A DNA stretch of 64,000 bases, taken from Asterias rubens. Its lineage: Eukaryota. The stretch lies in NCBI RefSeq assembly GCF_902459465.1, contig NC_047069.1:15748001-15812000 (forward strand). The letters are read 5' to 3'. Below, in pieces: positions 2,542-63,090 of this stretch (the first letter of the stretch is position 1; the number at the start of each line of letters is the position of its first letter). The position numbers and the translations under genes are program-made. The notes beneath the pieces are model-generated. The model did not search any database. It saw only the letters and a program-made list of their open reading frames with translations, and was not told where the DNA came from.

Positions 2542-4612
2542 TCTCAGTCATTAGTAATGACAGTTAGTTAATAATAATACCGGAGTCTTTCTTTCTAATG
2601 GTCGTATAACACAGGCATGGAACTTCTCAGCTAATCAGCTCTTTTTCTTTTCAAAACAGTGCCATAGAAAACTGAAATACACTGTACAAAAGTTAAGTGT
2701 GGTCGGCAATTTCCTGTTTTATAGAAAGTTCCATGTCTGATAACACACTCATGGCGCTGGAACTAAAACAAACATCTTAAGACAGGTTTTTCAAATGTTT
2801 GAATTATGCAACTACTTTCTGAAGCATCTTATAAAGGTTTACAAGTTGCTGTGTGGATTTAGCAGCCACTGCCAGAAATATTTGGGCAAACCCTTTTGTT
2901 AGCGAAAAGTGTAACTGGGTTCTTTGATGTGCGTTGCACAGCGCATGGAACCTACAGCGGAGCGTTCCAAAGACTGAGCAATAATGGTTTAAAGTGCCTT
3001 GCAATACTGACACAAGGTGTCAAAGCTGGGAATAAAACCCAAAGTCTGCTGATAAGAAACAAGTAGTGCTTGGCTTAAGTCTTGTTTGGGGCAACAGTAT
3101 TTAATTAAAGCCTGACTGCTGCTAAAAACCCGCTATCAGTCCATGAATACTTTCATCAATAAATCAGTCATTAGTGACAATTAATGACCAAAGTTTTATA
3201 AATTATTTCCGATAAATTGTCTCAATTCAGTTGGGTGTTAAATCAAAGGTGTATTCTAAGAATAATTTGGTTATTTGGTATTCATAGTTTGACTTTTTGA
3301 CTTTTCGAGCAGGGGAAGGGGAGGCCAATAATTCAAACTTTGAGAAAAAAAAAAAAAATAATAATAATAATTTGAATCTAACCACTTTCGATTAGTAATT
3401 TAATTTTATTATTTTCTTTGGTTATAAGGTAAAACTTATCCAGTCATTTCAGTGAAAACCTTTTGTAAAATTGTTTACAATTTTTACTTTTATAAGTGTG
3501 TTTTTCAATAATGAAATTGAACATCAAGTTTCATGAAATTAAGCACAATATTAGATTTACTCTTATTGCATTTACTTTTACTGGAAACAAATATAAATTA
3601 CTGGTAAAAAATTATCAGTAATCACAATCAATGAATCAGTTAAAAATATGTAGTTTTTGTATTACGGATAAAAACTATCAGTCAGAAAAACACAAAGGAA
3701 CCTGGTATTTTGGTTAAGTTTTTATGGTGAGTGAATTACTGACAGAAAATCAAGCTGTCATTTGTCAGTTTTTGTGATGAGCTGGAGGCCTTAACCAAAA
3801 ACTTTTACAATTTATTTTATTATTCAAAACACACACTGCGTAATTTTGGGGTATTGACCCATTTCACCTGACGTCATCATCAGAAAAATCTTGAATGCGC
3901 CATACTGGCGGGCAATTTCACTGTGTGTTTTCATATATAACTCTATGCTGTGCGTTAAGCATGGTGAGTGTGGCATCAGTCGCAGCGTGTGGCGCGCGTG
4001 CAAGGGGTCAATAGAGAAGTATCCTGAATTCTGAAAAAAAACTAGAAGAGTAGAATATATAGCAAGACATGTATACACATGGTGTTACTGCAAAGTTAGT
4101 ATACAACGTATACGGATTCAGTAGTATACACTTTTAGTGGATAAAATACAATTTCTGAAATTTTCCAGATATTTGACAATTGTTGTGATGTTTGCGTTAT
4201 ATTTCAAAATTCACTATTAACTTTACTAGACAAAGTTGTATAAACTAGAAAACAAATCAAATCAATTTAAACTTTACTATGAGAGAATGTATCTTCTTTT
4301 ATTTTCATAAACACATGGGAACTAATTCATTGATAAAGTACCTGGAAATAAACACTTTTGTACCATTTGATAAACTAGTTTGAAAATCAGTGTTTTTCTT
4401 TTAATATTTTAATTTTAAAAATTACATTATAAAAACACTTTAATTTTCTATCTTTATTTAAGCTCGTCTCCCAAAGTCGTCTTGACATTTGCCACATCCA
4501 TCAAGAAACAACCGGTATTTTAGTCGTCAACAAAATTACTTTGGGGAGAGAGAAAAACATTGTTTTTAAACCATACATGAGATGAAAACCACAATATACA
4601 TTTTTTCAAGTT

Positions 4613-4997
4613 AACTATGGTTTGGAACAAATTTGCACATCATATTTAGTAAAATTCACAAAACTGATTAAATGCAAAACATGAACAAAGTTAGCAAAAT
4701 TTAAATCAAATTCAAACTCGACCTAAATTACTTCAACTACTGAAGTACAAGTTGTACAACAAAACCCCACTTTCTGGTACAGTAAAATTATAATATTTGG
4801 TTGTATCAAGTTATTAAACTATGGTTTGGATTAAGTTTGCTTGTCGTATTTTTACAAAATTAACAAAACTGAACAAATGCAAAATTACCAAAATTTAGTC
4901 AAATTCAAACTTAAATTACTTTAACTACTGAAGTACAAATTATACAACAAAACCCCACTTTCTGGTACAGTAAAATTATAATATTTGATTGTATCAA
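4613..4997 (-). repeat. Approximately 190-bp tandem duplication copying the last ~25 codons, stop and 3'UTR of copy 7g
   Basis: 4613-4808 repeats 4817-4997; the copy reads [24 protein letters not shown](TGA) and has no acceptor. Confidence 0.85.
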
Positions 4998-5181
4998 ATA
5001 CTCCAATAAATTTACCGTGATCTAATGCATCCTCAAATTCAAATCCAGGTCTGAACGTAAAACCCAGCTCTTTCAGAGAAACGTTAACTGTTTTAGGCTT
5101 GGATCCTTTATTTAGAAACAGCAGGGCGTATTCTTCATAGCCAGCTAGTGTCCGAACCCATATTTCAACCGTAGAGTTGCG
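4921..5181 (-). CDS. Gene 2 terminal exon copy 7g (86 aa), most distal
   Basis: tttttctatacatccag|[25 protein letters not shown]...[18 protein letters not shown]; phase 0. Confidence 0.88.
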   Translation of the reverse strand, partial: RNSTVEIWVRTLAGYEEYALLFLNKGSKPKTVNVSLKELGFTFRPGFEFEDALDHGKFIGVFDTIKYYNFTVPESGVLLYNLYFSS

Positions 5182-8100
5182 CTGGATGTATAGAAAAATG
5201 AAAGAAGGTAAGTGGGACCTAATGGTTGTGGATTTAAGACACTGCTCTAGAATTCCAAAGATTGTGGGTTCGAATCTCACACGAGTAATACGCCTGTGAT
5301 TGGCTATAGCTGTGTCTGGATTGAGGAGCTTGGCTATGGCTGTGTCTGGATTGGATAGCTTTTGGCTATGGCTGTGTCTGGTATGAGAAGCTTGGCTATG
5401 GCTGTGTCTGGATTGGATAGCTTTTGGCTATGGCTGTGTCTGGATTGAGAAGCTTGGCTATGGCTGTGTCTGGATTGGATAGCTTTTGGCTATGGCTGTG
5501 TCTGGATTGAGAAGCTTGGCTATGGCTGTGTCTGGATTGGATAGCTTTTGGCTATGGCTGTGTCTGGATTGAGAAGCTTGGCTATGGCTGTGTCTGGATT
5601 GGATAGCTTTTGGCATTGGCTGTGTGTAGTTTGAGTGGCTTTTGATAATCACTACTGTAATGGTGTCCATAATGGCTATATGCCCAGATTAACCACAAAA
5701 ATTATTAAATTCCCAGAGCAGCCAACAGTAACATTAATAGCCCTGCACAGGCAAGGCTTCACGCAATAGCAGCTGTAGCCAGAGCCATAAGCCATTGATC
5801 CCAACATTTTTAGCAGTGTCCAGTCCATGTTGATGCTGCACATGATCACCATTAATATGAATTGAAAACAGGGCACCAGTGAATTAAAGCAATGAAAGTA
5901 TCAGTTTCTTACAGCACAGTGAATGATCAAGATGGCTGCTGGGTGAAATCTTTGAGAGTCAACTTGGAGACAAAGTGGAGTCGGTATTGTCACGAAAGTA
6001 CTTTCTTTGAATCACAGGTAAAATGCTCATCTTAAATCCGCATGAAATGTGTTTTGATCCACTTCCTTTCAAAGGATTGTTTAATTCTTTAACGGCAACA
6101 AGCAGCGTGTACCCAAACGCCCATAGTGGCCAGCCGCACAAGCTGCAAGGTTTGACCTAATTCCATTCACAAGATGTCTCAGTAAAGGTGATGTCCATAT
6201 ATGTGTCACTTTCTCTATGGTCCAATGTAGTTTGTTAACAAAGTATCCCAATTTCTAAACACAAAACTAAGTTTTCTGTTCAAGTTATTTTTGTTGACAT
6301 TTTTACTGACAAAATTTGGTTAACAATAGTTTTTAGCAATGTCTGGGCATTGTATGATAATTATACATAAATGAATGGTCTCTATAAAGAGTTTAAAGTA
6401 CACCTTTGAAATTTCTCATCTCGATCTTTAGGTTGCCAATTAAAGAGCATAAAACTACAATTGTTGCAGTGCTAACACAACTGGCTAACACACCTCGGTG
6501 GTTGGGTAAAAACCAAAACTAATATTCTTTATCCCTGATGCAAAATGTAACATCTCTTAATCTTTATTAGATCCCAAAAAGGGTAATTCAAAATTCAATT
6601 CATAAGCTGTGACTTGTGGTTAAAAAAATACGGTACTTTTTTTTATTTTCTGATCCTCATTTATTTGTAGATAAACCAAAGTCAGGACCTTCCATGGAGC
6701 TTTGTTTAACTACTGTCGTATAAATACAGCATGAGAGCTCCAGTTGCAGGTGCGGTGAAGTTGTAGACCTGGTAAGGACCTATGTGACCAATCTCCTTAT
6801 GATTTAAGACGTCTCGTAACTCGTACCCAATGTACGTTAGTCCGAGATCTTTGAATCTTAGCGAAATAGTTTGAGGTTTTGTGTCGGTGTTGAGGATCAC
6901 CACAGCCCATTCTCCGTTCTGGAAATTAAGTGCCCTTAGCCAGACTTGGACGAACTTTCCAAACTGTAAACACCAAGAAACAAATGAAGGACCTGGTAAG
7001 TCAACTTCCTCTGCAAGATTGGGGATTCGGATTCGAGAATTGTTGTAAGATGCTCGATAAGATGATAGGGAGTTGAGAGTGGGGAAGGTCCATAAGTGAA
7101 CTGTCCTATACAATTCTTTTTCATTCAGTCTTATTTTTCATAACGAGCCTTGCAACAAAATAAATTTATTCCCAGTGTTCAAACATCATAAACACAGCAG
7201 TGAAACTTAAGAAATCACAATTATGAATCAATAAAAAAACAGTCTTTACAACTTTAATTTATTTTTTAGTGTTTTATCCATACACTGATGTATGTAAAAT
7301 CACTTTCCCAATTCCTGTGAAGAAATTACACAGGTATTTTAATCGGGTGGTATTCAAACTTTGCCATTAAAGAGCAGATGTAATACCACTAGACCACTGA
7401 GTTTAAATCCTATATTGTAATTTTGATAGCTCATGTTGTATTGCTCATTGTTTGAAAAAAGTTTAGTGTTTTTTATCTTCAAATATTGTTTATTCTAGTG
7501 GTAAGCGCCTTGAGGCTAATTGGCATAAGGCAGTATATAAATTCTCTTTTATTATTATTATTATCTACATGATCTATTTTTATATTTTTTTTCCCAGGGA
7601 ACCGTGTGGTCATCAATCACTTCACAAAGTCCATTGGTTTAAGACTCAAAGAAGTTGCAAAAACCGTAAGTTCCAGTAACTGATCTATCAATTATTCTTA
7701 TTACCGTCTACTGGATAATTATACGAGATTATATGAGATTCTGTGTAATTCTTCTAAAGTGTCATGAGTTAATATAGGTAGGATAAGCGTAGAACATGAG
7801 TGCCCCATTGGCAGGGGCTGTGAAGTTGTACGATAACCGAATCCCAAGTTGCCCAATGTCCGTGTGGGTCAAAACCTCTCGTATGAAGTACCCCATATTG
7901 AAGGTGAACCCCAGATCGCCGAATTTGAGAGACACCGTTTGGGGCTTTGTGTCTCGGTTGAGAATGACAACTCCCCATTCTTGCCAAAGAGTTAGAGGCC
8001 GAAGCCAGACATCAACGGTTGTTCCAAACTGTGTGCAAATCAAGCAATTTACCTACTTATTCAATCCGCTTCATCCCCAACGGGACAAATTTAACAAAAG

Positions 8101-11100
8101 GACAACTGGAATTTTGAACCTAGTTGGGAAACCGGCTCAGCCAACTAAGCATAGTCAAAAGTAATTAAGCCCAGTTTATGTTTTAACTGGTTTCAAAAAA
8201 AGGAAAACTGGAATATCAAACCTAGTTGGTGAACCTGAGCTTAATCCAGTTGAACATCAGAACATTATCAAAAGTAGTTGTTCAACTTTGACACCAAAGA
8301 ATTTCTACGGAAAAGGGAAGAATAGAGCACTGGCAGGACCCCACAGACCCGATCCTTAAGGTTGTGCGTGTGCGGGATTTGGTGTGTGTGTGTTTTGGTG
8401 AATGAAAGATGAGTGACAAGATTTTGAATGCAGCTAGCTTGAATTGTAGTACCCTTCCAAAAAGATTAAAATAAACATTTTCCCAATCCATCGTTCTCAC
8501 CATACGCGTGTGACTTGCCAAATTTGGTAAAACCAGCGGAGGAAAATCGAGCACAGCAAGAAGAAAACAAAATGTGCAGAGAAAGCATAACAGACTCTTG
8601 ACTCGATGTTATAAATTTGTACTTATTTTTTAATTATTTACTTTTATCTGTGAACAATTTCGGGTAAATCAATCCCTCTGCCCAAAAGAAATCCCCATAC
8701 CCTCATATACACCTCATGTTCTGTTAGTATACCATGACTAAGCACCCCAGGTATGCAAATTATTCAAAATAATCGTAAAATCTGATGACTAAAATGTAAA
8801 AATTTTCTTCATTCTCTTCCTTGGACGTCTTCCTTTATAGGGAGAAGATTCACGACGATGAATTTAACTACTGTCATAAGCGTAATACATGAGCGCCCCC
8901 AACGCAGGCACAGTGAAATTCAGCTCTTGATGCCTGTCCACATGACCGACTTCCTTATGAGTCAAGATCTCTCGTAGTTCGTAACCCATCATGTAAGAAA
9001 AACCCAACTGGCTCAGCTTAAGAGTGACTGTTTGGATCTTGGTGTCCTGGTTGAGGAACACAATCGCCCACTCTTCATAATATTGAAGAGGTCGAAGCCA
9101 GACTTCTACACTCCCGAACTGTGGATGGAAAATCAAGGAGACGAAGCCAGTGGTAAGTGTGATAACAAGTCGCTCATGTGACCTTTTGTTGTTCAGTTCC
9201 TATTTTGACATGTTGGAAGCAAGTCGCTTGTGTAACTTTTTGTTGTTGTTCAGTTTCTATTTTGAAATGCTGGAAGCAATGTCCATCTAGAATGCTGGAA
9301 ATAGTGTCAATCTAGAAAATACTGTCTAGCAAATTTCTTTGCTAAGTAAAAAATGAGTGGGGCACCATGACAGTTATAGCAAGATTTTTCTGTGCTCAGC
9401 AAAGTTTTATGCTTACAGACTTTACAAATTGGGTGCTTTCACAGAGTAAACATGAGAATAGACCTTGGTACCTCTTTGCTTACATAACGATAGTTGATTT
9501 AAAAATACATTTCTGACACTTATTCTCTTGATAGAATTTGAACTGCCTCTAGCTACCGCGCAATCTCAGTGGTCTAGTTAGTATGACACTGCTCTAGAAT
9601 AGCAAAGGTTGTGAGTTTGAATCCCACCCGAGTAATATACCTGTGATTTTTTTCACAGAACTCCGATAAAAACCAAAATAAATATTCTTTATCCCCGATG
9701 CAAATTTAATATCTTTTAATCTATTGTTATTTCTCAACAGGAAGTTAACTCACAAGATAAGCATAAAGCTGGATAGCTCACGGTGCAGGGGCTGTGAAGT
9801 TGTACGGTAATTCAACTCCAAGTTGCCCAATGTCCATGTTGATCAAGACCTCTCTAATGATCAAGTACCCCATCCCAAACCTGAACCCAAGACCTCTGAG
9901 TTTGAGAGACACCGTTCTATGCTTTGTGTCTTGGTTGAGAATGACAACGCCCCATTATTGCAAATAATGAGAAAGAGGCTGAAAGCCAAACATCAACAGA
10001 AGTACTAAACTGTGATCAAACCAGGGGAGAATCTATTGGTAAGTTGACATCTGTTTCTCAGAATCCTAGAGAAGACTTTTTATTCTCTCTCTCTCCCCCC
10101 CCCCCCCCCCCTAGTCACCATAACCATGGCCCTCCTCCTTCCTAACATCCATTGAGCTCAAGTCAAAATGATTTTTGTTGGCTATTCATCTTGGCTATTC
10201 ATGGTTTATTTTGTCAAAAAAGAAACAACAAATCCTGGTGATTCAAAGACTCTTTGTTCTCTTGGCTTTGTTAAGTCATGGTTCTTAGTGCCTCTCATCA
10301 AAAACAAAATAATTCCAGCTATTCCGAGAATGATAATCTCATCAGTGAGAAAGGGAAAAATGTAAGATCTCTAGCATTAAATTGGCTACATGTAACTGCT
10401 TATAATAATTGAAATGACAGTTGCATGCATTTGTGCCTTGTTAAAGTTGGCTATACTTTTATGACATAAACAAATTAACTTTTTCTCAACAAATATTCTT
10501 GTAAATTGTACAAATGAGTTACGCTGCAAAATGAGTTGCTGATGAATGCTTTGATGAGAAGTGGCATGAGTTATGAAGATGAAAAGTTTGATGTGAAATG
10601 AAAATTAGTAGTTTGAATTTATCAGGAGGGACTGACAGACGCTTGGTAGTGACAAAGAAACATGACAGAAAGAACTGGCTGCTGGCATTAGGCATTGGCA
10701 GCAATATTGAATAAGTCTAAACTTAGTTTGTTATTAAGGTTTGTCGATAACGTTATGGATATTTAAACTGGTTCCTACATGTAGATGTGGTAGACAGTGG
10801 GAAGACAAAGTAAATGGTTAAAATCAAAAATAAAGACTTGACTATCAAATTAGCATGCGTGTATTAAGTCAAACTCAGTTTAACTTGGTTTTCGGTGTCG
10901 TCATTCAAGATGCAAAAATTTCAGAGATACAAGATCCTTGATCCAAAGATACAAGATCTTTGATCCCTGATCCATAGTTACAAGATCATTGATCCTTGAT
11001 TTCGGAAAAAAAATTTTGAACCACAAATACAAAATCCTTGATCCCGAGATTCAAGATCCTTGATCCAAAGCTCAAAGATGCATACAAAAACACAACTTCA

Positions 11101-14100
11101 AGTCATCATAAATTAAAAAGTACATTTTTTATTACTGAACCAACACCAAATTTAAAGGCATTTATCAAATTGGAATGTGACAGAAGGAATGAACACTCAC
11201 TAAACCTAGACTGACGGAATGAAAATTAACCAATCGAAAAATTTAACATATAATAGACCACTGTACTGCTGGTATTACAGTTTGCTTACTGCGAGAATAA
11301 GTGCTGTAACTGTGTACTGAATTTCAGACAATTGAGCAGAGACACACAATGGCCTCCCATTTTTCTGCAAAATGATAATCAACCTGTGTTGCATCAGTAC
11401 TAAGATCTATGAAGAGTAATACTCTAAAATAAAACCTTTACATAAACAAGATTTACATAGTTACTGGTATAAAACTTAGATAATTCTATTGTTGGTTTTT
11501 TTGTTAATATTTTCCCCAGATACAGGCAACAACAGAAATGTTGTTTACCATTTTCTTAGAGGTGGGATCCTTGGTAATCGAGAGCCATTTTGAATTCCAA
11601 ACAATCTCTCATTTTGAAAAAGATGATGAGAGGAAAGAAAGCTTAACATCTAAGATGTGTGCTTTTATTATCTGATCTCATTCGATATCAGACTTTCCTC
11701 CATTTTTGAAGCTTTGGATCCCGTGGATAATAGTAAACACGCGAGTACACCCATGTTAACTGTTTAACAATACATGGTTGTACCTGCAAGTTTACTAGCT
11801 ATACATTTTGTAGTGTTCCCATATCTGTCACTAAGGATATTGAAGGATTTCATTCAGCTCTTTTGCATCTAGCAAATATTTTGACTGAATGTCAATATTG
11901 GGTAGCATATGATGATTTTTGAATAGCAACTAATATAATTTACGTAGCAGTTTTCTATGCTACAAGAGAACTGTTGTTACCTGAATTGTATGTGTAGTGT
12001 GTGTGGTTTTATTCCTTGAAGGAACATCATAAGTCACATAATTTTTATTTCATTCGTCTTTCAAAGATAATCATTAATTTTTGAGCAGTTTTCTTTCTAA
12101 ATTAAGGCACTTCTGGATCAAATAACGCCCAATGGGAACAGCTTAGTACCATGTGGGCCTATGATCATCCCAAGTCCTGAAAAAAATCTCCAAAATCTAC
12201 TTTTTAACAAATATTTGTCTAAACATTAACGATAGCGTAAACTATTATTTCCAAAAATCTCCAAAAAGGAGCTAGTAAAAAACAGATTTTAAAGTCATCA
12301 TGTTGATGACGACTCGCCTTTCAACAACATGGCAGCACCCAAAACTATTCTTTATTAATTGTAATTAAACTGTATTTAAAAGAAAAAAAAAACATTTCAT
12401 TTGTTAGACAAATCTGTTGCTTCTTAGTCTCCAAATGTGTATTAATTCTATAGTATTTGAGGGAAACTTAATTCTAGTTCTTCTGATGGTTGCTCAAAGA
12501 GCCCCCAAACAGACTTTCCTCCACATACTGCATGTCTTTAAAACACGCATTCTATTTTTTTTGCTATTTCTTTCCTTTCTCTTTGTGGCGTGTCATGGCC
12601 GAGCGGTTAAGAGCACACGTAAAATTGGGGAGGTAGTGCTTTCTGCTCTACCGGCCAGGTTTCGGACTGATGATACAAGCCTACATCCGTATCGACTGTA
12701 AAAGGGGTAACCCTGTTCAAGCCCTAGGAGTAGGCGGCATAAAATAATTGTAGCCCACACCATGAAGTGGCCTTCAGGCCTTGTGTGTCTGGCGACGTGC
12801 ATAAAAAAGAGAAAAAAAAGTTAAAAACCTCCCATAGACTTTGTACACACATTCCTTCACCGTCTTTAGAATTCCCCTATGGATCTTGGGTTAATTTTTC
12901 CGTTTTGTTCTTGGTCTTATAAGGTAGTGAATATGACATCACAATGGTCAACAGGCAACAATGAAATAATACATATTCTATAAAAACTGATATATTTTTC
13001 TAGATAACCCCATTACTTTGAAGTGAAATACTTCTCAAAATGCTTTATACTATCGAAACCGGATGTACATGTACTTTTAACCAAAGTGTTTTATTGCTAC
13101 CCTTAATTTTAACAGTGATTACCAATCGTATACCTTCCCTTAAAAAACTAATTATTTGGACCCAATATGCTAGACAATATAGAAAACCCTTAAATTAATG
13201 AACTTTTGCCGAGTTGTTTAAGTAGATTCAGAGAGTTGTGAGAATTGACTATTGACTCGGATAAGCATAGTACATAAGAACTCCAACTGCAGGCACATTG
13301 TAGTTGTAGCTAGTGCTGATGTTGCGATGTCCAATCTGTGTGTTGGTCAGCACATCTCGCATCTCATATCCAGCAGAAGATTGGAACATTAGTTGTTTTA
13401 GTGACATTGGAACTGTAACTGGTTTGGTGGCGCTGTTTAGGAGCACAAAGGCCCACTCATCTGACCCAGCTAGGGGTCGTACCCACACTGCAACTGTCGT
13501 TCCGAGCTATTTGTAGGAAGTAAAATGGAATGGGAAGCCCAGGCTAGTTTTGTTGCTTAGTTGGTACTGGGCCCAATTTCAAAGAGCTTTTTGTAAAGCA
13601 CAAAAAGTAGCTAAGCACAACCAAGTCATGCTTACCAGAATAATGTTACCAGCCAAAATATTGCCACTTGTACAATCTGTGACTGTTTTTGTGTGTATTT
13701 GTGCCAAGCAAATGGCTGGTAACCAGTCTCTGTTTTAAAAGCGGGATTTCGCTGTGCATAGCATATTGTTATGCTCACAGGCTTTATGAAATCGGGCCCA
13801 GATTGGTCAAGTTTATTGATACAACACCAACATTCTATAGTTAATTCTTACTTTCTAAAAATAGAAATTGAAAACATTTTTCAAATAATTTGTGCCTTTG
13901 CAATTTTCACCATAATGGTAATAAATTCATCTTGTCTAATATAAAAATAACAAAAAATAATATTTATTTTATTTAGGAGGTTCTAACAGTATTATTTCTC
14001 TCATTACTTCTCTGAGTTCTGACTCACTTTAATTCCAAAGGCAGGACACCCTGATTTTTTTCTCGAAACCTTCCTTTATGTTTTAGAATTTCACAGCAAC

Positions 14101-17100
14101 TATTATATTGGCATGCAGATTTTAAAGCGATGTTAAAGCAGTGTCAAAGAGCTTTATTAATGCATTTAAGTTAAGTTCAGTTTCTGCAGAACAGATGCAT
14201 TTGCCAGGCACAGCAAAACTTTGAATTGTTTTTTTCACCCTTCAATTTCTATATGCAACAGCTGAGAAAACACTTAACCAAGGAAATCAGCTGATCATCT
14301 GAAAGAGTCATGTGTCCGATTGTAACAATATTTTGTTCGTAATTCACAGCTGTTTTATTGGAATAATTTCCATACAATAATAATTTAAAATGCCAAGGAT
14401 GTTTGTTCCATTGTGTTCAAATTGGAGCATCAGTAGGTATATTTAATGACAAAGTAATTTTCAAAATTAACTGAGAATGTGTTTGAGTAATTTGCAGAAT
14501 TAACCATTAATTCGTTTGTGTGTGAATCTGTGAAACTGACTTCCATTTTAAAAAGTGATCTGTTAAATTCTGGCTTGAATGTAAATCGTGCTTAAGACTT
14601 TGTACTTGAGAAGGGCATTGTTATTGTTATATTGTTGTCTCATGTTTTGTCACTTAATGTCGTAAGAATCGGAATTTACTACAATTATGGGATACCCCCT
14701 CTCATTCAACCCTTACCAATCTATGATCTGACCTAATCAAAGTTGCATCAGAAACAATTTCTGACACAATTTTGTCCAGGTCAAACCTTTAATTTACACA
14801 GATTGAATAGACTACTCATCTGTTGTCTAACCTTCCCACCCCACTCCTGTCCCTCTGCTTCATTATACATCTGTTTTATAACTCAGTATACTAATTTTGT
14901 ATTAAAATATCAAGGAAATTATAATTCAAACCACAGCCATTTTTTGACACCACATCTTAGGTTTCAACGCCAGCATCATCAGCCTATTTAAAGTAGTATC
15001 CCTTATTAGGTTCAAATTACGGGGCAAAAAACTGTTTTTACTTAATCACATTACTTTGAAAAGAAATGTTTCTCAAAATGCTTTTTACTATTGAAAGCTG
15101 CTCTAGCTCGTCTAGGCTTCTAACTAAAGGTTTTTGATGCCATTAATTTCAAGAGTGATTACCAAAGGTAAACCCGTAGATAAAGTGCTGAATTTACAGA
15201 CATTTAGAGGTCAATAGAATTAATTAATTACTGTATTTATTTACTTTGATTTTATTTACATAAGCATAGATCATTAAGTGTCCATAGAAAAAGGACTTTA
15301 TAATAGTGTATTGTGTATTTTAAGTTATTCAGAACGAATTTTGCCAGACATTTAGAGGTCAAACAATTGTATTTTTTTATTTCCATAGACGTAGATCATT
15401 ATTTGCCAATAGAGAAAGGGCTGTATAAGGGCTGTATGCATAAGGGCTGTATTTGTCCCGATGTAAATTTCCATCTACTAAGGCTGTATAAGTATTAAAG
15501 ACACTGGACACTATTGGCAATTTTCAAAGACCAGTCTTCTCACTTCTGTATCTCAACATATATGCATAAAATAACAAACCTGTGAAAATTTGAGCTCAAT
15601 CTGTCATCGAAGTTGCGAGATATTAATGAAAGAAAAAACACCCTTGTCACACAAACTTGTGTGCTTTCAGATGCTTGATTTTGAGACCTCAAATTCTAAA
15701 TCTGAGGTCTCAAAATCAAATTTGTGGAAAATTACTTCTTTCTCGAAAACTACGTTACTTCAGAGAGGGAGCCGTTTCTCACAATGTTTTAATACTATCA
15801 ACCTCTCCCCATTACTCGTTACCAAGTGATTTTGTGATAATAATTATTTTGAGTAATTACCAATAGTGTCCACTGCCTTTAATGTATTATTGTATTGAGA
15901 TATTCAGAACAAATTTCCAGACATTCAGAGGTCGACAATCAATTGTATTTATTCGTTTCCATAAGCATAGATCATTAAGACCCCATCGGCTGGCATTGTA
16001 TAATTATGAGCTTCACCGGGAGTCCAGTATCCAATAAACTTATGATTGATGATATCTCTCATCTGATACCCATAATCATACATCAAGCCAAGTTGTTCCA
16101 ATTTGAGGGAGACGGTCTGAGACTGTGAATCTTGGTTCAGGAATAAGATTGCATAGCCCTCCCAGAAGTCAAGATGTTTTAACCACACCTCTGTCTTAGG
16201 TTTCAACTGTTTGGAAATAAAAGGACAAAGGTGGGGCCTAAATGACTAGTACTAAGAGATAAAGGAACTATTGGTGGGACCCAAATTACTTTTACAGTTT
16301 AATGGGCCTAATAAAGGGCTGCTTTTGGAGGTAAAAGGGCTAAATGATTAATAGAACACAGATGGGTTCTAAAGAGGGTTTAACATTTTTTAGGACTTTA
16401 GAAAGGTATAAGTGAACTCATGAGACATTTAAGCGGTGTTGGATTTTAAACTATTATTCCAAGATGACTTCTTGAAATGATTGTGTCTCCAGCTCATTTG
16501 TCTTTTTTTTCATGCTCAATTTTGCAATGGGGGCAATTTTGAATTTGGAATTGAACCATTGAACAAAATTTGAGAATTCAAACAGATTTGTTAAACTTTT
16601 GTGTCGTCAGGAGTTTACTATTTTTACAATAACTGTATAATTTGTTTTACAGCAATGTTTAAAGATTGACAAGGATTTTTTTGTTTGGGGTTTAAATAAG
16701 GGGGTGTAGAAAAGCAGGAAAACTTTATGAATGGAGGACGAGACTTTAATGTGAAATGGTGTTATTGCTGGATGTGAACTTGTGTGGATGTGGATGAAAA
16801 ACCAATCATTTTTTAATGTGTGGTTTACGGTTTGCGGCTAAATGTATGATTAAGAAATTATGATGTGAAATGAATGATTTGATTTGATTTGACGGATTTT
16901 GTATATTGACAATGTTGAGTCTCTGGCCAGTTTGTTTCTGCTGGCCTTTGCGCTTTCCCCATATTTCTACTAACTTTGTTCCGAGATTGCCCGGTAGCTA
17001 GAGGCAGTTCAAATCCTATGTTTTGGCAGCAGGTCTTGCACTGATATAAAAGATGTTAAATTTGCATTGGGGATAAAGAATGTTGTTGTTTTTTTTTTTG

Positions 17101-20100
17101 CAAGTTAACCATCTGTTATAATTTTGTACTGTATTGATTCCATAAAACTGAATCCTGTAAAATAGTTAAACATTTTAGATTGAATAACTCATTTTAAATT
17201 TAAGGAGTTTAAAAGAGTTTCGCACCAGATGTTTATCAAGTAATGGGAAAATGCAGATGCTGGGCACAAAGTTTTGAAGCATTTCTAAAAATGAGTCAAA
17301 GGTCATAAAATATTAGACCCTCCAATGTTCATCTTGCTACACTTAAATCAAATATTTAAAAAAAAATCCCTTTTTGAATGTTAAAAAGCAAACTCAGAAC
17401 AACAAACTATACAGAGAAATGAGAATATGATTGAAGTGACAATCTGGAATGACCCATGATAAAAAAAAATTAAAAAAATTAACTTACCTCCAACATTTTC
17501 TTTCCCATCTTGCCAGCAGGATCTTGGTTAATCCGGATGACTTCCTTGTTCAGTAAGATGTCTCTGTAGACAGGTTGGATATTGCGTAGATCGTTGGACA
17601 TCAAGAGAGGAGCGGCGAAGATGGCCCACATAGCCATCTGAGCGTTAGATTGGTTCACATTCAACCCTTTGTTGCCAATAATTAACTGTAAGTAACATCA
17701 GTAAATATACTTTGTTTGTAAAATCAAAGAATAGAGATATGTTGCGTTGAGGCTACTTGAGGTTGAGGCTTAGGCTACTTGAGGTACGACTTGAGGGACT
17801 GGTTGAGGTACGACTGCAGGTTGAGGCCTAGCCTACTTGAGGTACTACTTGAGGTTGAGGCTTAGAAAGTTGAAACTTGCTGGTCACTGCACCAGGAGGG
17901 AATTTTGAAACTTTTTTTTTGTCAGACAATTTCAAACATGAAGCCATCACTTGGAAAAACCTACAAATTACTAGTAAATGCCAATGATAAGGCTACATTT
18001 GTTTTCAATTACTGATGTACTAAAACCTGAACCTTGTTTTCAATGCTGTAAGGTTTTAAGGCTAGATAGCACATTAATCTGGCGGTCACATGTTAAAAAC
18101 CTGTGCTATGCATCTCTTTGTTCACCCCAAAATTTCATTATAAATGTACCAAGTTAGTTTTCCCTCGTGGTTTATGACTTGTGAGATTTAAAGGATTTGG
18201 GTACCTTTTCAAAATGTCCATAGATTTACATTAAACTTACAGGGTTTGAAGATAATGATAGTGGAAAGCTTCCCTTCAAATTTTACTTACTGAGGTGCTG
18301 TAGTTTTTGAGAAATGAGTAAAACAATGTCATGAAAATACGTTTGTAAATGATTTCCCAAAAACTACAGCACCTCAGCACGTAATATTTTCAGGGAAGCT
18401 TTCTACTATCATTATCTTCAAACTGGGTAAGTTTCATGAGACGAAAACTATTTTTGATGACATTGTTTTACTCATTTCCCAAAAACTACAGCACCTCAGC
18501 ACGTAATATTTTCAGGGAAGCTTTCTACTATCATTATCTTCAAACTGGGTAAGTTTCATGAGTAAAAACTATTTTTGATGACATTGTTTTACTCATTTCC
18601 CAAAAACTACAGCACCTCAGCACGTAATATTTTCAGGGAAGCTTTCTACTATCATTATCTTCAAACTGGGTAAGTTTCATGAGTGAAAACTATTTTTGAT
18701 GACATTGTTTTACTCATTTCCCAAAAACTACAGCACCTCAGCACGTAATATTTTCAGGGAAGCTTTCTACTATCATTATCTTCAAACTGGGTAAGTTTAG
18801 TGTAAATCTGTGGACATTGTGTTTTTTGTCCTACAAAAGTTACATAGACCCTTTAATACTCACCATATCTGGATCGTTGAAGTGTCCAGGACCAGCCACT
18901 GGGACAAGTGTCTTCTGATTGTCACCATAATACTTTATAATGCCTGTTACTGAATCCCAAGAGTCCTGAATGTCATTGTAGTTACGCCAGATGTTACAGT
19001 TATCAGCCACTGAAGTGTAATTGATCTGAAATAAAGCAATCAATCAAAACAATTTATATAGCTCAGTAGGATTTTTAAACTAGACATAGAATCTATTTCA
19101 TAGAAAATGCTCTTGACTTGAGTACAAATGGGTTTTCTGTTTTTTTTTTAAATGTTCACATTTGGTGAAGTTTTAATGTCCATAGAGAGACCATATAAAC
19201 ATCAAAGAATCAAAGAAATTTAAATCAAAGAATTTTCCGGGACTCGAATTTCAGGGGGAAATGTACAAGACCACAGGGTCTGTAGCTCAAAATGTTTACA
19301 GAAACAACTTTCTTTTCACAAGCTCAGAATCAAAATGAGAAACAAAATAATCTATCACAAACTGTTTTGGTTTGAACAAACACTTGAGAAGATCAATCTC
19401 ATTTGTCTTATGGGTAAGTATTCTTTGATACTCAACAGAATTAAAAAATATTCATTGAGGTTGTATTATTCGCTTGAAAAAAACTAAACCTTAAATTTTG
19501 TCCAGTTGTGAGTTTTGAGCAGCTTTAAAAAATTGGGATCAGGGTTTAATTTCTTCCTTACAGGGATATGGAAAGCTCGTTCATAGTCAGGCCAGCTGCA
19601 GGAAAAGAGAATCGGACGGCCGGTAGCATTCAAGTATTTAGTCATCTCAGGGTATCCTGGAGGAATTACAAAGAATTAGTTGAAATTTAAAAAAGGAAAG
19701 AAAAAGTTGTGATTGCTAACTGACAAAAAATGATTCACGTTTTTTGTTTTTTGCCCTCACACCAATGTGTACTAAATCCCGAGTTACATGTATGAAAAAG
19801 CTAGTGCCATACGGCAGCTCAGGACTGTATAATACTTGCAAGGGAGCTGAGAACGATTAAAGGAATGTTTTGGCCCAAGGTCCAGGGTACTAATTATGTA
19901 ATGTGCATTGAGACCTTATTATGAATTGCGCTACATAAGAACTAACTAGTTATTATTATAATTATTCAGATACAACACTACCCAAAGGAGATTTACACCA
20001 AGTGCAACCGCAAACCTCACTTCAAGATTTAAAAAACTAACAGATAGTTTTGAATCTCCAAGGAAGGTGTTACCCGTCTTCATTGTTGATACATTAGAAT

Positions 20101-22593
20101 AACATCCATCAAGTTTTAGACTATCGACACCCCAGCTGGCAAACGTCTGGGCATCGAGCTCAAGATGATTCAAGCTGCCTGGGTATCCACCACATGTCTT
20201 GGTTCCGTAATCACCGTAGATACCAAACTTTAGACCTCTGCTGTGGACCTGACCAAGATGAAGAGGAAATGATTAAAAATTCTCTTGGCCTGGTACTTCA
20301 CGGAGGCAACAAAGGTGATTGCTTCCATGCCCCTAGTCATTGCCTTGGTGCCCTTGAAATGCTCCTGTAGAAATTTACAATTTCCTCAAAAGGGTACCCT
20401 TTACCAAGGAGAAAATGCCTTGGTTTCCTTGCACTTTCAAAAAACGAAGCATACAGACCTGTAGATAATTTGAATTCCTCAAAAATCCATCTCTTACAGA
20501 CGGCATCATTGACTTATACTGTTCCAAATCTGGAGGCATCTTTAACAAGAATTCAAATCCTGGATTATGATGGATTTAGTTTGACTTACCCTAATGTAAA
20601 TTCAGTTTTGGTAATAACTAATAACAGTGTGAATACATCTACTTTGCTGTGTAGATATGTTCCTAGAGAACTTGTCTTGCTTATTAAGTCTACTGTCGCA
20701 GAGTAACTCTTGTAATTTGGGAGACTAAATAGTTCAGAAAAGAACTGCCCGCTTATGGGTGAGTTTTTGATTGGTCCGAACATTGTCAATGTCTTCTCTC
20801 CATTGGGTTCTTGGCTACTGTAATGATTAAGTTTTTTTTTCTGAGAGAGTCCTTGGCTTCATCAGCCAGAATTAATTAATGAAATGACCTACATCCGTTG
20901 ACTTACATAATCAGCCAGAGCTTTGATTCCACTCGGGAAGCGTACCGGGTCTGACTGAAGTCTTCCTTGAGCATCACGTTGTTTATTACTCCAGCAGTCA
21001 TCTATGTTGATGTACTGGTATCCAGCATCTTTGTAACCATCTTCAACCATACGATCTGCCATTTGCATCACAAGCTTTTCACTGTCAAATATTTAAGAAA
21101 AAAGATAAAACAAAGTGAAGTCTCTACTTTAAAAATAATTTGAACAAAAATTCTTAAAGCAGAACTCTTTTATTTATCAACTCATGAATAGCAAACTGAC
21201 ATTGAAATGTCAAAACAAAATTAAAGTAATGAAAAATCCTGAGAATAAAATTACTAGAATTTTATAAACTATAAGTTTTCTCACTTCTATAAAATGTACA
21301 GACAGGTGGCACATCACAAAAATTGTATTGTATAGTTACAATATGTTTATTTAATAAAATGTACAGATCATGTGATTTGTTTGTTTTAGTTGCCCCTGTC
21401 ACCCCTGTTAACTTTGTCTGTTCTTGAAGGTTTTGTTTGATCTGTGCAATTGTTATGGCAATATTAACCCTGATTAATAGTGCTGATCTCCTTTTTTCTT
21501 GATTTATTTATTTGGTGTTACTAGTAAGACCAAATACATTTTTTTTAAAGGAGTACATGTCTGAATAAACAATAAAAGGAACTGATGGAGGAATTCCTTT
21601 GGAAAATACATAAATAAAAAGCTGTTCAAATCAAGGGGTGGGTAGATTCTGTTTTATTTACATGAAAGATTTTAGCAGGTGTTATATGGTAAATCAAAGT
21701 TAGGTTTAGATTGTGCTCCCATTAGTTGATGGAATAACATATTGATATGAAATACAAAGTCCAAGCACCTTTAGTTATCTTATCTTTTAGTTGATGCACT
21801 TATAGATCTTGATAACCAGTAAGCAGATAATGCTAGCATGGAGGGAGGATATACCTCTGGTAATCACTCAAAAAATGTATGACCATCATACAGGATGTTC
21901 GCGACGCACCAACTATTAGTATTTTTAAGAGTAAACTTCAAGATGGATATGGGTAACATCATCGGGGGGGGGAGGGCTCACTTCATGTAAATCATTGCTG
22001 CTCAGTCACCTGCACGTGTACATCCCGATATGTGGAGATTGTGCAGTAATTCTCCAGAACCAGAACCACTTTACTTGGTATTACAGAAGCACTGCAGCTG
22101 TTGATAATGTATATAACATTTTGGAAAAACAATTCCCTTCAAATGAACGTGGTATCATAGAGAGAGAGATTAAAATCGATCCAAGCACAGATTTTTCTTC
22201 CTGTGTGGACGAAAACAGCTCCAGATTTCCATGTGAAATTGGTCCATAATTATAGGTATTTTATATTGGCATTGTGGGAAGGGAAAAGGGGGTTTGTAAA
22301 ACCACCCTTCTCCTTTCTACCATGCCCTTTGGCAGTTCAGCAAAATCAGTCACGGGGTAATCAGGTTAAGGTCTATGGATGTAATGAAAGAGACAAAAGA
22401 AATATAAAAAAAGGACAAAACAAATATGGTTGTATAATAAGTACCTGACACAATTGTAGGGATCATTCTTGCAGTCGGTATTGCAACGGAATCGTTCCCA
22501 TGTCATCCATCCCATAGGAGGCGTCCTTCCTAGGCCATTGTCCAATGCCTGGGTACTCACTGCACACAACATCAACAGAGCAACTGCCAACAT
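4921..22593 (-). CDS. NAGA: GH27 alpha-N-acetylgalactosaminidase-like gene 2: constant exons 1-6 plus an array of alternative terminal exons
   Basis: Exons 22593-22445 (signal peptide, [19 protein letters not shown]), 21081-20907 (175 nt, NIDDCW), 20248-20074 (175 nt, SLKLDGC nucleophile), 19656-19562 (95 nt, FSCSWPDY), 19025-18864 (162 nt, WRNYNDI acid/base), 17685-17488 (198 nt). GT-AG junctions and phases are consistent. About 403 aa with the nearest terminal exon. Confidence 0.95.
5301..5610. repeat. Higher-order minisatellite: five 62-bp dimers of alternating 30- and 32-nt units
   Basis: tggctatggctgtgtctggattg followed alternately by agaagct or gatagcttt; unit starts 5301, 5331, 5363, 5393, 5425, 5455, 5487, 5517, 5549, 5579. 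Confidence 0.92.
6706..6963 (-). CDS. Gene 2 terminal exon copy 7f (85 aa)
   Basis: ttggtgtttacag|[27 protein letters not shown]...[18 protein letters not shown]; phase 0; AATAAA motifs within about 70 nt downstream. Confidence 0.88.
   Translation of the reverse strand, partial: FGKFVQVWLRALNFQNGEWAVVILNTDTKPQTISLRFKDLGLTYIGYELRDVLNHKEIGHIGPYQVYNFTAPATGALMLYLYDSS
7762..8028 (-). CDS. Gene 2 terminal exon copy 7e (88 aa)
   Basis: gatttgcacacag|[26 protein letters not shown]...[21 protein letters not shown]; phase 0; AATAAA at 7553-7548. Confidence 0.88.
   Translation of the reverse strand, partial: FGTTVDVWLRPLTLWQEWGVVILNRDTKPQTVSLKFGDLGFTFNMGYFIREVLTHTDIGQLGIRLSYNFTAPANGALMFYAYPTYINS
8864..9118 (-). 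CDS. Gene 2 terminal exon copy 7d (84 aa)
   Basis: ttttccatccacag|[25 protein letters not shown]...[18 protein letters not shown]; phase 0. Confidence 0.88.
   Translation of the reverse strand, partial: FGSVEVWLRPLQYYEEWAIVFLNQDTKIQTVTLKLSQLGFSYMMGYELREILTHKEVGHVDRHQELNFTVPALGALMYYAYDSS
9745..10009 (-). pseudogene. Gene 2 terminal exon copy 7c, pseudo-exon
   Basis: gatcacag|FSTSVDVWL, then a +1 T frameshift (TGGCTTTCAG versus TGGCTTCGG in 7e), TAA where 7e has GAA (Q*WGVVILN), and TGA where 7e has Gly (APAP*AIQLYAY). Colinear with 7e. Confidence 0.85.
13249..13506 (-). CDS. Gene 2 terminal exon copy 7b (85 aa)
   Basis: cttcctacaaatag|[24 protein letters not shown]...[15 protein letters not shown]; phase 0; AATAAA at 13095-13090. 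Confidence 0.88.
   Translation of the reverse strand, partial: LGTTVAVWVRPLAGSDEWAFVLLNSATKPVTVPMSLKQLMFQSSAGYEMRDVLTNTQIGHRNISTSYNYNVPAVGVLMYYAYPSQ
14930..15430 (-). pseudogene. Scrambled relics of 7a-type terminal exon copies
   Basis: 15326-15401 and 15190-15278 match the 3' end and UTR of 7a (cagacatt.agaggtc...catagatcatta). 14949-14968 matches the 5' end of 7a (accaca------tcttaggtttcaac, 6-nt deletion, no AG). Confidence 0.6.
15495..15882 (+). mobile_element. Kolobok-like TTAA MITE (family A, about 390 bp)
   Basis: TTAA|AGACACTGGACACTATTGG...CCAATAGTGTCCACTGCCT|TTAA; internal hairpin gatttYgagacctca...tgaggtctcRaaatc. RR...YY termini with a TTAA TSD are the Kolobok signature. Confidence 0.85.
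15949..16206 (-). CDS. Gene 2 terminal exon copy 7a (85 aa)
   Basis: ttatttccaaacag|[12 protein letters not shown]...ILFLNQD...[19 protein letters not shown]; phase 0 acceptor. Confidence 0.9.
   Translation of the reverse strand: MKPKTEVWLKHLDFWEGYAILFLNQDSQSQTVSLKLEQLGLMYDYGYQMRDIINHKFIGYWTPGEAHNYTMPADGVLMIYAYGNE
18188..18856. mobile_element. TTAA-flanked foldback MITE with one arm amplified into about 4 x 121-bp tandem repeats
   Basis: Units start at 18352, 18474, 18595 and 18716 and are the reverse complement of 18245-18340; the terminal TTAA at 18853-18856 abuts the gene 2 exon 5 donor. Confidence 0.8.
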
Positions 22594-23410
22594 GTTGACT
22601 TTATCTGTAAACAAAAGAAAGTGTCAAAATGCATTCTCCTGAAGACGAGCAGAGTGCACTGTTTGAAACGTTGAGACCCAACCGGCTCTTTTCAGAGCCA
22701 ACACTCACCCTACAACAGATTTACACATGGTTGTACCCGCAAGTTTACTACTTTTTTATAGTTTCTTCTTATTTCTCCACACCATGCAAAGCTTCAAACA
22801 CACACTGTCAAAATGATGTTGGCAGGCTAGGTTGTGCCAACATACAGCTAAGGGCTTTGGTTTATTTTTGACAAAAATCAACAAGAAGCAGAGCAAGTTA
22901 CAATTGTAAACAACCTATATTATTAATAATTACAAATTACAAAACTCAAATTTCCTTAATAAATACAAACGCGAGCAATGCAGTCTGCAATAACACACTT
23001 CCCAAATTAGGAAGGGTTAAAATCATACAGCTTTTTTTTTATTTATTTTTTTAGCACTCATGTTTTGATGTGTAAACCAACCGAAAACAAACAAAACAAA
23101 CAATCGTACACCGAACAGAGGCGGGACAAAAAAAAACCCAGTAGTATTGCAGTATTGTAAACACCGAAAATCAAACAAATCGAATCAACAAATCAATCAT
23201 AAATACCGATTGCCGACGCAATACTGAAAATATCAAGCCACATATATATACTTGCTTTCTCTGGCTGAGCAAGTGAAGGCAATTCCCATCAGTAGAGAAG
23301 TAAATTTCCCGTCAAAATACTTGCCTTTTATGTACCCCCGTCTGCTTGTTGTGGTGAAGGTCGCAGCTAGCTAGCTCGAGAGGTCATGGACAAACTAGTC
23401 AGCTAGCAGT

Positions 23411-25178: not shown

Positions 25179-25564
25179 TTAAAGACAATAGAACTAATTG
25201 GTAATATTGTCAAAGACCAGTCTTCTCACTTGGTATATATATCTCAACATGTGCATAAAATAACAAACCTGTGAAAATTTGAGCTCAATCGGTCGTCGAA
25301 GTTGCGAGGTAATAATGAAAGAAAAAACACCCTTGTCACACGAAGTTGTGTGCTTTCAGATGCTTGACTTGGAGACCTCAAACTCTAATTCTGAGGTCTC
25401 AAAATCAAGTTCGTGGAAAATTACTTCTTTCTCAAAAATTACGTTACTTCAGAGAGAGCCGTTTCTCAAAATGTTTTAGAATTATCAACCTCTCCCCTTT
25501 ACCAAGTAAGGTTTTATGCTAATAATTATTTTGAGTAATTATCAATAGTGTCCACTGCCTTTAG
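25179..25564 (+). mobile_element. Kolobok-like MITE family A
   Basis: Full-length match to 15495-15882. Confidence 0.85.
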
Positions 25565-53370: not shown

Positions 53371-53404
53371 GGCTATTCCTAAGTTAGGGCGACTAACTCG
53401 TCCC

Positions 53405-53720: not shown

Positions 53721-53787
53721 ATGACAGAATTCTTAAAAACGGATTGCAAAGTTATGTATGGCTCAGGGGGCTGTACAAAGAGTTAAT

Positions 53788-62904: not shown

Positions 62905-63090
62905 TGCACTGGACACTGTTGATAATCACATAAAATAAGTGTTAGCATAGAAACTTACTTGGTAACGAGCAATGGAGAGCTGTTGATAGTATAAAACATT
63001 GTCTTCCAACTTTGATGACCAATTGAGTTAACATTTTCACAGGTTTGTTATTTTGTGCATAATGTTGAGATACACCAAAGGTGTCCAGTT
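62905..63090 (-). mobile_element. Kolobok-like MITE family A, internally deleted
   Basis: gcactggacactgttgataatcac...gagatacaccaa...gtgtccag fragments. Confidence 0.6.

Follow-up and report, generated by a model that had tools for sequence, protein, structure and literature searches.

A tandem array of alternative last exons in a GH27 α-N-acetylgalactosaminidase-like gene of the starfish Asterias rubens

Several protein classes include genes in which a constant part is joined to a single member of a tandem set of homologous variable exons. In UGT1A and the clustered protocadherins the alternatives are first exons; in Drosophila lola, mod(mdg4) and PGRP-LC they are 3' modules. These genes differ from the Asterias rubens gene described here (gene 2) in the gene end or the protein class concerned, and some of them use trans-splicing or promoter choice, of which gene 2 gives no sign. 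The nearest analogue is found in the insect serpins (Drosophila Serpin 42Da, Pteromalus PpSerpin-1 and Manduca serpin-1), which resemble gene 2 in that a constitutive backbone is followed by tandem homologous alternative exons coding the C-terminal part, in a turnover of exons through tandem duplication, in the sharing of orthologous alternative exons among species, and in alternative splicing trading off against gene duplication (PMC4006314, PMC10513286). The serpins belong to an unrelated family in another phylum and swap about 40 residues that include the specificity loop, whereas gene 2 swaps a near-whole domain of about 85 residues located off the active site.

Within its own family, GH27, which has been much studied owing to Fabry and Schindler disease, the vertebrate enzymes (chicken 1KTB, human NAGA 3H53 and human α-galactosidase A 1R46) share with gene 2 the two-domain fold, the catalytic motifs and an organization into 7 coding exons with domain 2 in the last one. 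To our knowledge the human GH27 genes have a single last exon; we know of no cassette array in them and of no agreed role for the C-terminal β-sandwich past stability and dimer contacts.

The 64-kb window (the whole stretch of DNA analysed) contains gene 2 on the minus strand, with coding exons 1-6 at 22593-17488 followed by six intact and one broken copies of the last exon (Table 1). These copies form a real array, and we regard it as highly probable that they serve as tandemly duplicated alternative last exons. A tblastn search of the window with each cassette peptide found all seven copies on the minus strand, together with single copies at the ends of genes 1 and 3, and with the splice model it confirms the seven copies, six of them intact, that a first-pass annotation had placed downstream of exon 6. 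That annotation had also described a phase-0 acceptor and a stop codon for each intact copy, and both are present: the AG acceptor occupies the same alignment position in 6/6 intact cassettes, 5-6 residues ahead of a conserved VW, with a polypyrimidine tract upstream (pyrimidine content 0.50-0.82), and because every intact cassette has its own stop codon an mRNA ends in a single cassette. Pairwise amino-acid identity, judged by eye at 35-55% in the annotation, holds at the low end and extends in the computed range to 61%. Exons 1-6, searched for across 2600-17400, gave chance-level matches only (E about 1 or worse), in agreement with the earlier claim that no copies of them lie between the cassettes. 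The defects of 7c are identical in A. amurensis, and this dead copy provides an internal control for the appearance of a cassette without selection.

Table 1. Coordinates of the exons and cassettes of gene 2 and of the single cassette copies of genes 1 and 3 in the window
Feature	Position	Strand	tblastn span	Observations
Optional 5' leader exon	23207..23243	-		Upstream in-frame ATG at 23243; donor GT after 23207, acceptor before 22604
Exon 1, coding part	22445..22593	-		ATG at 22593, signal peptide, mature N-terminus; splice model identical to RefSeq X5
Exon 2	20907..21081	-		Splice model; PF16499 match
Exon 3	20074..20248	-		LKLDGC nucleophile motif
Exon 4	19562..19656	-		SCSWPDY substrate-recognition loop
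Exon 5	18864..19025	-		Acid/base Asp motif NDIQDSW
Exon 6, last constant exon	17488..17685	-		Phase-0 GTAAGT donor after final base 17488; codes first β-sandwich strand
Cassette 7a (type a)	15949..16206	-	16206-15952	In A. rubens X3, A. amurensis X3; orthologues in Patiria, Acanthaster X3
Cassette 7b (type b)	13249..13506	-	13506-13252	In A. rubens X1 and X5, A. amurensis X2
Cassette 7c, dead copy	9748..10032	-	9981-9757	One frameshift and two in-frame stops
Cassette 7d (def type)	8864..9118	-	9118-8867	In A. rubens X4, A. amurensis X6, intronless contig L006
Cassette 7e (def type)	7762..8028	-	8028-7765	Without A. rubens annotation; in A. amurensis X5; weakest pyrimidine tract (0.50)
Cassette 7f (def type)	6706..6963	-	6963-6709	In A. 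rubens X2, A. amurensis X4
Cassette 7g (type g), most distal	4921..5181	-	5181-4924	Without A. rubens annotation; in A. amurensis X1; orthologues in Patiria X1, Acanthaster X2
Gene 1 end, single cassette copy		+	2290-2538	
Gene 3 end, single cassette copy		+	32304-32552	

The family assignment was based on a (β/α)8 catalytic domain of the PF16499 type, a nucleophile Asp in K-x-D-G-C, an acid/base Asp in D-I-x-D-S-W and a C-terminal PF17801 or PF17450 domain. All six intact cassettes score above the Pfam gathering score for PF17801 (Melibiase_C), covering about 67 of the 71 profile positions, while exons 2 and 6 match PF16499 (Melibiase_2; E = 6e-26 and 6e-21), as do the full isoforms. The match of a full isoform to chicken α-NAGAL 1KTB runs from end to end (E = 2.5e-148, residues 17-401), the LKLDGC and NDIQDSW motifs align with those of the chicken enzyme, and the catalytic aspartates D155 and D216 are invariant in an alignment of 56 sequences. 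In the NAGA-type loop that recognizes the N-acetyl group, small Ser and Ala residues replace Glu and Leu; the gene 2 loop keeps the Ser and has Asp at the Ala position, and the substrate specificity of gene 2 is putative. The AF2 model of the 7g isoform (pLDDT 93.2, pTM 0.90; pLDDT 94-98 across most of the cassette) has alternating strands and helices in the catalytic domain and an eight-strand sandwich in which strand 1 comes from exon 6 and the other seven from the cassette. All isoforms have in common the signal peptide, the (β/α)8 barrel with both catalytic aspartates and strand 1 of domain 2, and they differ in the remaining seven strands of the C-terminal β-sandwich.

Splicing of the phase-0 exon 6 donor to any one of six acceptors (7a, 7b, 7d, 7e, 7f or 7g) is largely supported. 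The A. rubens RefSeq isoforms XP_033631496-501 (X1-X5), which like all XP_ isoform records are predicted Gnomon gene models, join the exon 1-6 model to 7b, 7f, 7a or 7d (4/6 cassettes), and mapping of their N-termini shows that the leader-exon ATG adds 16 residues before the signal peptide in X1-X4. Isoforms X1-X6 of A. amurensis use cassettes g, b, a, f, e and d respectively, hence all six. An intronless contig of another asteroid (L006) has all of the predicted junctions joined, including that of exon 6 to 7d (17488 to 9118), and its 3' UTR aligns collinearly with what follows 7d; it could be a transcript or a processed retrocopy, and would in both cases derive from spliced mRNA. No transcript-derived protein fragment spanning exon 6 and a cassette was found for A. 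rubens, the cassette-profile search returning only six short ORFs, those of which that were read being genomic and intron-led.

The array is shared among asteroids. The independent A. amurensis assembly is collinear with that of A. rubens (DNA identity 76-97%), and Patiria miniata has four cassettes whose order (a, b, def, g) and flanking paralogues match those of Asterias; from the collinear assembly and the matching Patiria layout it follows that the array is no assembly artefact, a possibility that the first-pass annotation had raised together with a check of other sea-star loci. The cassette tree recovers orthology clades for type a (100/99), type g (100/100) and type def (93/81), and signature motifs specific to each cassette type are kept between asteroid orders, near-identically in types a and g. 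The array has been kept since before the split of Forcipulatida and Valvatida. Six versions of domain 2 on one barrel, with these motifs retained, suggest that the domain has a particular role of its own, and the gene 2 isoforms offer a ready-made set with which to probe it (oligomer state, stability, pH, glycosylation and partners). The central proposal of the first-pass annotation, that a single catalytic domain is joined to alternative C-terminal modules to give up to six isoforms, gains support from the RefSeq models, the L006 junction, purifying selection and the asteroid conservation. Its statement that no such system was known stands in that our literature search found no paper describing a swappable last-exon array in GH27, but RefSeq already lists the isoforms themselves, for amphioxus as well as for several echinoderms.

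The purifying selection is evident from the pattern of substitution in every intact cassette, and it bears on whether only 7a or a few cassettes are used, the rest being decaying copies stitched into gene models by homology. The dead 7c, the want of an A. rubens model for 7e and 7g, and the predicted nature of the XP_ records would all accord with such relics. Between A. rubens and A. amurensis, however, the intact cassettes have far fewer non-synonymous than synonymous changes (Sd 31.2, Nd 13.8; binomial test against the neutral 0.777, p = 3e-11), giving a pN/pS of 0.13 that is not near 1, and this holds for each of them: synonymous and non-synonymous changes number 4 to 1 in 7e, 4 to 0 in 7f and 7.2 to 3.8 in 7g, where neutrality would give about 1 to 3.5. 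Introns of the two species are 76-97% identical. Among the paralogous cassettes, synonymous sites are saturated (pS 0.71-0.92, with pN 0.26-0.42), yet the frames are still open. With type a and g motifs near-identical across orders, and 7c at hand to exemplify absent selection, we consider decaying relics very improbable. Slighter still is the chance that each cassette is a separate transcription unit, with its own gene or promoter, joined by trans-splicing or coding a stand-alone small protein. Intron-blind gene callers do report free-standing cassette ORFs of 66-135 aa on metagenome contigs; the leaders of these ORFs are nevertheless intron sequence, variable where the cassette is not (in ORF P0001 the 50-residue leader shows 2 changes and the cassette 0), and a lone cassette would have neither a signal peptide nor sandwich strand 1. 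The array holds no exon 1-6 copy, and in L006, as in all models, the junction from exon 6 to the cassette follows cis order.

Alternative last exons of this kind would be chosen by competition between a proximal acceptor, probably followed by cleavage and polyadenylation, and elongation to the distal cassettes. AATAAA or ATTAAA occurs downstream of every cassette, but at background density (about 2.4 per kb), and the hexamers were dropped as a sign of separate 3' ends because such a density is uninformative. Choice of the 3' splice site alone, with one shared poly(A) site after 7g and the later cassettes carried as 3' UTR, is an unlikely but not negligible alternative, which the background hexamer density favours. 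The compact spacing also speaks for it: a and b lie only 427 nt apart in Patiria, where the entire array spans 3.6 kb, d, e and f of A. rubens are spaced by about 800 nt, and the L006 3' UTR, at 922 nt or more, exceeds the 835 nt that separate 7d from 7e in A. rubens. Those 922 nt contain no second cassette, however, and in A. rubens the 11-kb array would give the 7a mRNA an 11-kb 3' UTR; a far-upstream stop without a downstream junction is tolerated, yet UTRs that long are unusual. The swap of cassettes would tune properties governed by domain 2 (for example dimer partner, stability, glycosylation or surface charge) and not catalysis itself.

RNA pairing was considered as a means of control. 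Comparison of 40-nt windows of the post-exon 6 intron with the 500 nt upstream of each cassette gave no common docking window for docking-selector pairing, and control of the Dscam exon 6 type is unsupported for want of a shared docking site, though short or degenerate sites could escape the scan. The sole strong duplex in the scan was an inverted interspersed repeat, for which a tRNA-derived SINE was rejected since no tRNA was found in it. Duplex energies over the whole Patiria region equalled those of shuffles, and the Asterias-Patiria comparison yielded no conserved intronic or non-coding block beyond the coding parts of the cassettes and a single acceptor.

Last-exon variation extends beyond asteroids. 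The crinoid Antedon has one exon 1-6 set and five last exons, and RefSeq isoforms also vary at the last exon in Amphiura (an ophiuroid, its array size taken from proteins only), Apostichopus (a holothuroid) and Branchiostoma (amphioxus). The cassette tree, built on only 86 columns, suggests that at least three cassette types predate the echinoderm classes; it places 7g inside the asteroid clade, and 7g was rejected as an orthologue of the 'type 2' cassette of crinoids, ophiuroids and holothuroids. The A. rubens array may descend from a multi-cassette gene of the echinoderm ancestor that in asteroids was partly resolved into three genes (1, 2 and 3), the def cassette probably having re-expanded in the Asterias lineage to give c, d, e and f. 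We further propose, tentatively and at less than even odds, that the last-exon array is ancestral to echinoderm, possibly deuterostome, GH27 and about half a billion years old, with loss in vertebrates, part-conversion to genes in asteroids and at least three types (canonical, 'type 2' and AYPSE-type) each shared among classes, the cassettes acting as a programmable module that determines the dimer partner, whether the enzyme is secreted or lysosomal, or how substrate gains access to the single barrel. Such an ancestral array would be an undescribed way to diversify glycosidases and would offer a clear example from nature of splicing alternatives traded off against gene duplicates. The few known arrays of alternative terminal exons would gain from it an old deuterostome member, in which exon arrays and gene duplicates interconvert.

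Gene 2 may also be connected to a known protein. Starfish α-GalNAcase II was purified from the digestive organ in a study that presents no gene or cDNA, describes the genes as still to be isolated and does not mention C-terminal variants (PMC5445309). The loop reported for it, SGSAPAY (PMC5445309), is absent from gene 2, which has SCSWPDY. The 20-residue N-terminus of α-GalNAcase II is identical to the predicted mature N-terminus of gene 2 (20/20) and differs from those of genes 1 and 3, a sequence match that we take as a lead to gene 2 as the likely locus behind the enzyme; the gene 2 product may accordingly be digestive rather than strictly lysosomal.

A translated self-comparison search places three GH27 genes in the window, with genes 2 and 3 head to head; their relative order and orientation recur in Patiria miniata and A. 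amurensis, and among these three cluster paralogues the cassette array is confined to gene 2. Gene 2 junctions, set by GT/AG dinucleotides, an uninterrupted frame and consistency with the paralogues, define exons 1-6 encoding a 318-residue core that ends in a phase-0 GTAAGT donor. Seven copies of the last exon (cassettes 7a-7g) lie 3' of exon 6 on the same strand, and the other exons are not copied: searching the array with exons 1-6 gave matches at chance level only. Six of the seven retain an open frame of 84-88 codons, and each of these six has a phase-0 AG acceptor at the equivalent alignment position and its own stop. Because frames, acceptors, stops and the exon 1-6 search all agree, the first-pass annotation was correct in describing seven copies, six of them with intact frames, in its acceptor coordinates, and in finding no copies of exons 1-6 between the cassettes.

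Features of the GH27 cluster, gene 2 and its cassettes, with matching RefSeq isoform models
Feature	Position	Strand	Basis or description	A. rubens	A. amurensis
Gene 1	last exon 2290-2538; truncated by window start (window 1-2538)	+	translated search		
Gene 2 constant part incl. leader	17488-23243	-	translated search, splice model		
Gene 3	exons ~25778 to 32552	+	translated search		
Leader exon, in-frame ATG	23243-23207	-	upstream start of A. rubens X1-X4		
Exon 1	22593-22445	-	GT/AG, frame, paralogues		
Exon 2	21081-20907	-	GT/AG, frame, paralogues		
Exon 3	20248-20074	-	GT/AG, frame, paralogues		
Exon 4	19656-19562	-	GT/AG, frame, paralogues		
Exon 5	19025-18864	-	GT/AG, frame, paralogues		
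Exon 6	17685-17488	-	GT/AG, frame, paralogues		
7a	16206-15949	-	translated search, open frame	X3	X3
7b	13506-13249	-	translated search, open frame	X1, X5	X2
7c	~10032-9748	-	translated search; frameshift, two stops		
7d	9118-8864	-	translated search, open frame	X4	X6
7e	8028-7762	-	translated search, open frame	none	X5
7f	6963-6706	-	translated search, open frame	X2	X4
7g	5181-4921	-	translated search, open frame	none	X1
Inverted repeat copies	16983-17099 (intron after exon 6) vs 9531-9718 (~400-600 nt upstream of 7d) and 6508-6559 (between 7f and 7g)				
Interspersed repeat family	~15495-15770, 25240-25500, 28500-28680, 29520-29720, 30680-30965, 40760-41120, 43000-43360, 53060-54600, 62900-63100	both			

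The proposal that one catalytic barrel is joined to alternative C-terminal exons is supported by isoform models and by one independent sequence derived from spliced mRNA. A protein search with the gene 2 exons retrieves A. rubens RefSeq proteins named alpha-N-acetylgalactosaminidase-like, of which X5 (XP_033631501.1) is identical to predicted exons 1-6 plus 7b. RefSeq models cover four of the six intact cassettes in A. rubens and all six in A. amurensis, and isoforms X1-X4 of Patiria miniata and X1-X4 of Acanthaster planci carry four distinct last exons per species. To our knowledge, the NCBI pipeline adds extra isoforms only with transcript-alignment support. A 2205-nt intronless contig from another asteroid (assembly GCA_014845345.1; exons 85-96% identical to the window) contains all predicted junctions, 17488 to 9118 included, and its 3' UTR is collinear with the sequence downstream of 7d; transcript or retrocopy, it stems from an mRNA in which exon 6 had been spliced to 7d. 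The leader-exon ATG of A. rubens models X1-X4 adds 16 residues ahead of the signal peptide, which, were this start used, would no longer be N-terminal.

The six cassettes are under coding constraint. Among A. rubens paralogues pS is saturated (0.71-0.92) and pN is 0.26-0.42: the cassettes are old duplicates with coding retained. The A. amurensis locus is collinear with the window (76-97% DNA identity); between the two species the constant exons give a pN/pS of 0.06 (Sd 22.5, Nd 5.5) and the six pooled cassettes 0.13 (Sd 31.2, Nd 13.8), so that the dN/dS comparison called for by the first-pass annotation returns ratios not near 1, with paralogue pN well below pS. Non-synonymous differences make up 31% of cassette changes against a neutral expectation of 78% (binomial p = 3e-11), and every single cassette shows the same lean, including 7e and 7g, which have no A. 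rubens model. The frameshift and stops of 7c, the picture of a copy free of selection, are identical in both species, and its death predates their split.

Each intact cassette, taken alone, scores above the gathering cutoff of Pfam family PF17801 (C-terminal beta-sandwich of alpha-galactosidase), with near-full profile coverage, and exons 2 and 6 match the catalytic-domain family PF16499. Over its whole length, a full gene 2 isoform can be aligned to chicken alpha-N-acetylgalactosaminidase (1KTB, E = 2.5e-148) and also to human NAGA (3H53); both catalytic aspartate motifs are present, their aspartates invariant in a 56-sequence alignment. An AlphaFold2 model of A. amurensis X1, which carries the most divergent cassette (7g type), has a mean pLDDT of 93.2 and pTM of 0.90, reaching 94-98 over most of the cassette. 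Strand 1 of its 8-strand sandwich (residues 314-319) comes from the end of exon 6 and the remaining seven strands from the cassette, therefore the exon boundary lies within the first turn of domain 2; in the modelled fold a last-exon swap would exchange nearly the whole domain. The cassettes differ in net charge at pH 7 (-4 to +0.8), in the loop following a conserved I/V-G, and in sequons (one each in a, b, d, e and f, three in g, at differing positions). Domain 2 of GH27 structures contributes to the dimer interface and stability, so partner choice and stability are our leading guesses for what the swap may affect.

As to how a cassette is chosen, in the isoform models the single exon 6 donor pairs alternatively with several terminal acceptors. 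This choice is probably linked to 3'-end cleavage and polyadenylation behind the cassette that is used. Every cassette has poly(A) hexamers downstream of it, at background frequency only. That all cassettes instead share one distal 3' end seems unlikely, although the short cassette spacing in Patiria leaves room for such an arrangement. A search of the array for Dscam-style docking/selector pairing found none, nor did comparison of Asterias with Patiria reveal conserved intronic blocks. The sole strong intron-intron duplex (~-68 kcal/mol) is formed by an inverted interspersed repeat with copies 85-95% identical, which might cause 7a-7c to be looped out of the pre-mRNA or might simply reflect where transposons happened to insert. 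Copies of an abundant interspersed repeat family are scattered across the window in both orientations, one of them inside the array between 7a and 7b.

The array is well supported and its history is unexpectedly deep. The orthologous locus, which the earlier annotation proposed to examine in other sea stars, carries the array both in A. amurensis (collinear) and in Patiria, where the four cassettes of gene 2 run a, b, def (the class of 7d, 7e and 7f), g over 3.6 kb and the gene is flanked, as in Asterias, by gene 3-like and gene 1-like paralogues. In a maximum-likelihood tree of 49 last-exon peptides, whose 86 columns limit its resolution, clades a (100/99), g (100/100) and def (93/81, with 7d, 7e and 7f inside) are recovered and 7b lies near the valvatid b pair; a 97/94 group holds all asteroid gene 2 cassettes, the gene 3 last exon, Amphiura X15 and X6, Antedon X4 and X5 and one hemichordate protein; a second clade (95/89) holds Antedon X1, Amphiura X5, Apostichopus X2 and Diadema X1; and Antedon X3 falls together with the last exon of asteroid gene 1 (95/86). 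At the Antedon locus, five last exons over 13.5 kb come after a single set of exons 1-6, and its five RefSeq isoforms are identical over the first 322 residues and divergent thereafter. Apostichopus X2 and X3 are distinguished by the last exon alone; in Amphiura, whose isoform numbers reach X18, at least six last exons occur in combination with two exon 3 versions; and amphioxus isoforms vary in exon 5 and the last exon. The simplest reading of these sequences is that the echinoderm ancestor had a multi-cassette gene whose cassettes were of at least three types; asteroids would have spread these types over three genes, the Asterias lineage later re-expanding def. Asteroid cassette types keep their own signatures between orders, for instance the C-terminal half in type a and the PGFEFEDA motif in type g, which argues for type-specific function.

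Amphiura filiformis proteins P0167 and P0183 swap two versions of exon 3, which carries the nucleophile motif, and Branchiostoma P0225 and P0267 two versions of exon 5, where the acid/base motif lies; both cases resemble mutually exclusive internal exons, within this same gene family. Two 7d copies are present in A. amurensis (22151-22402 and 23941-24192 of its locus, L003) versus one in A. rubens, whose 7d protein is identical to the non-collinear copy.

Two alpha-GalNAcases have been purified from starfish digestive organ, their genes still awaiting isolation at publication (PMC5445309). The N-terminus of alpha-GalNAcase II matches the one predicted for the mature gene 2 protein at 20/20 positions (22545-22486, minus strand), a stretch unchanged in A. 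amurensis and different in genes 1 and 3. Since the published MS-derived active-site loop (PMC5445309) mismatches gene 2, that gene 2 may encode this enzyme is a lead rather than proof; if it holds, the gene 2 enzyme would be digestive and not purely lysosomal. The first-pass annotation knew of no such system for a lysosomal glycosidase: full-text searches indeed turned up no paper describing alternative last exons in GH27 or echinoderm NAGA-like genes, but the isoforms are already public in RefSeq and systems of this kind are known. Insect serpins are the closest analogue described, with arrays of alternative C-terminal exons (PMC10513286, PMC4006314) and a trade-off between alternative splicing and gene duplication common to both.

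Single cassettes were also called as free-standing proteins (P0001-P0011) on short echinoderm contigs in marine metagenomes (ENA ERZ1764477, a TARA sample); as genes these were rejected, being mis-called exon ORFs. The 7f-7g intron contains a minisatellite (5300-5645), just upstream of the 7g acceptor region, with tandem units reading ...SRHSHSQ... and ...NPDTAIAK.... A local tandem duplication (4672-4818 versus 4860-5006) has copied the last 24 codons of 7g into its 3' flank (4736-4807, minus strand) at 96% identity to the source, and A. amurensis has the same duplication (L003 28063-28116).
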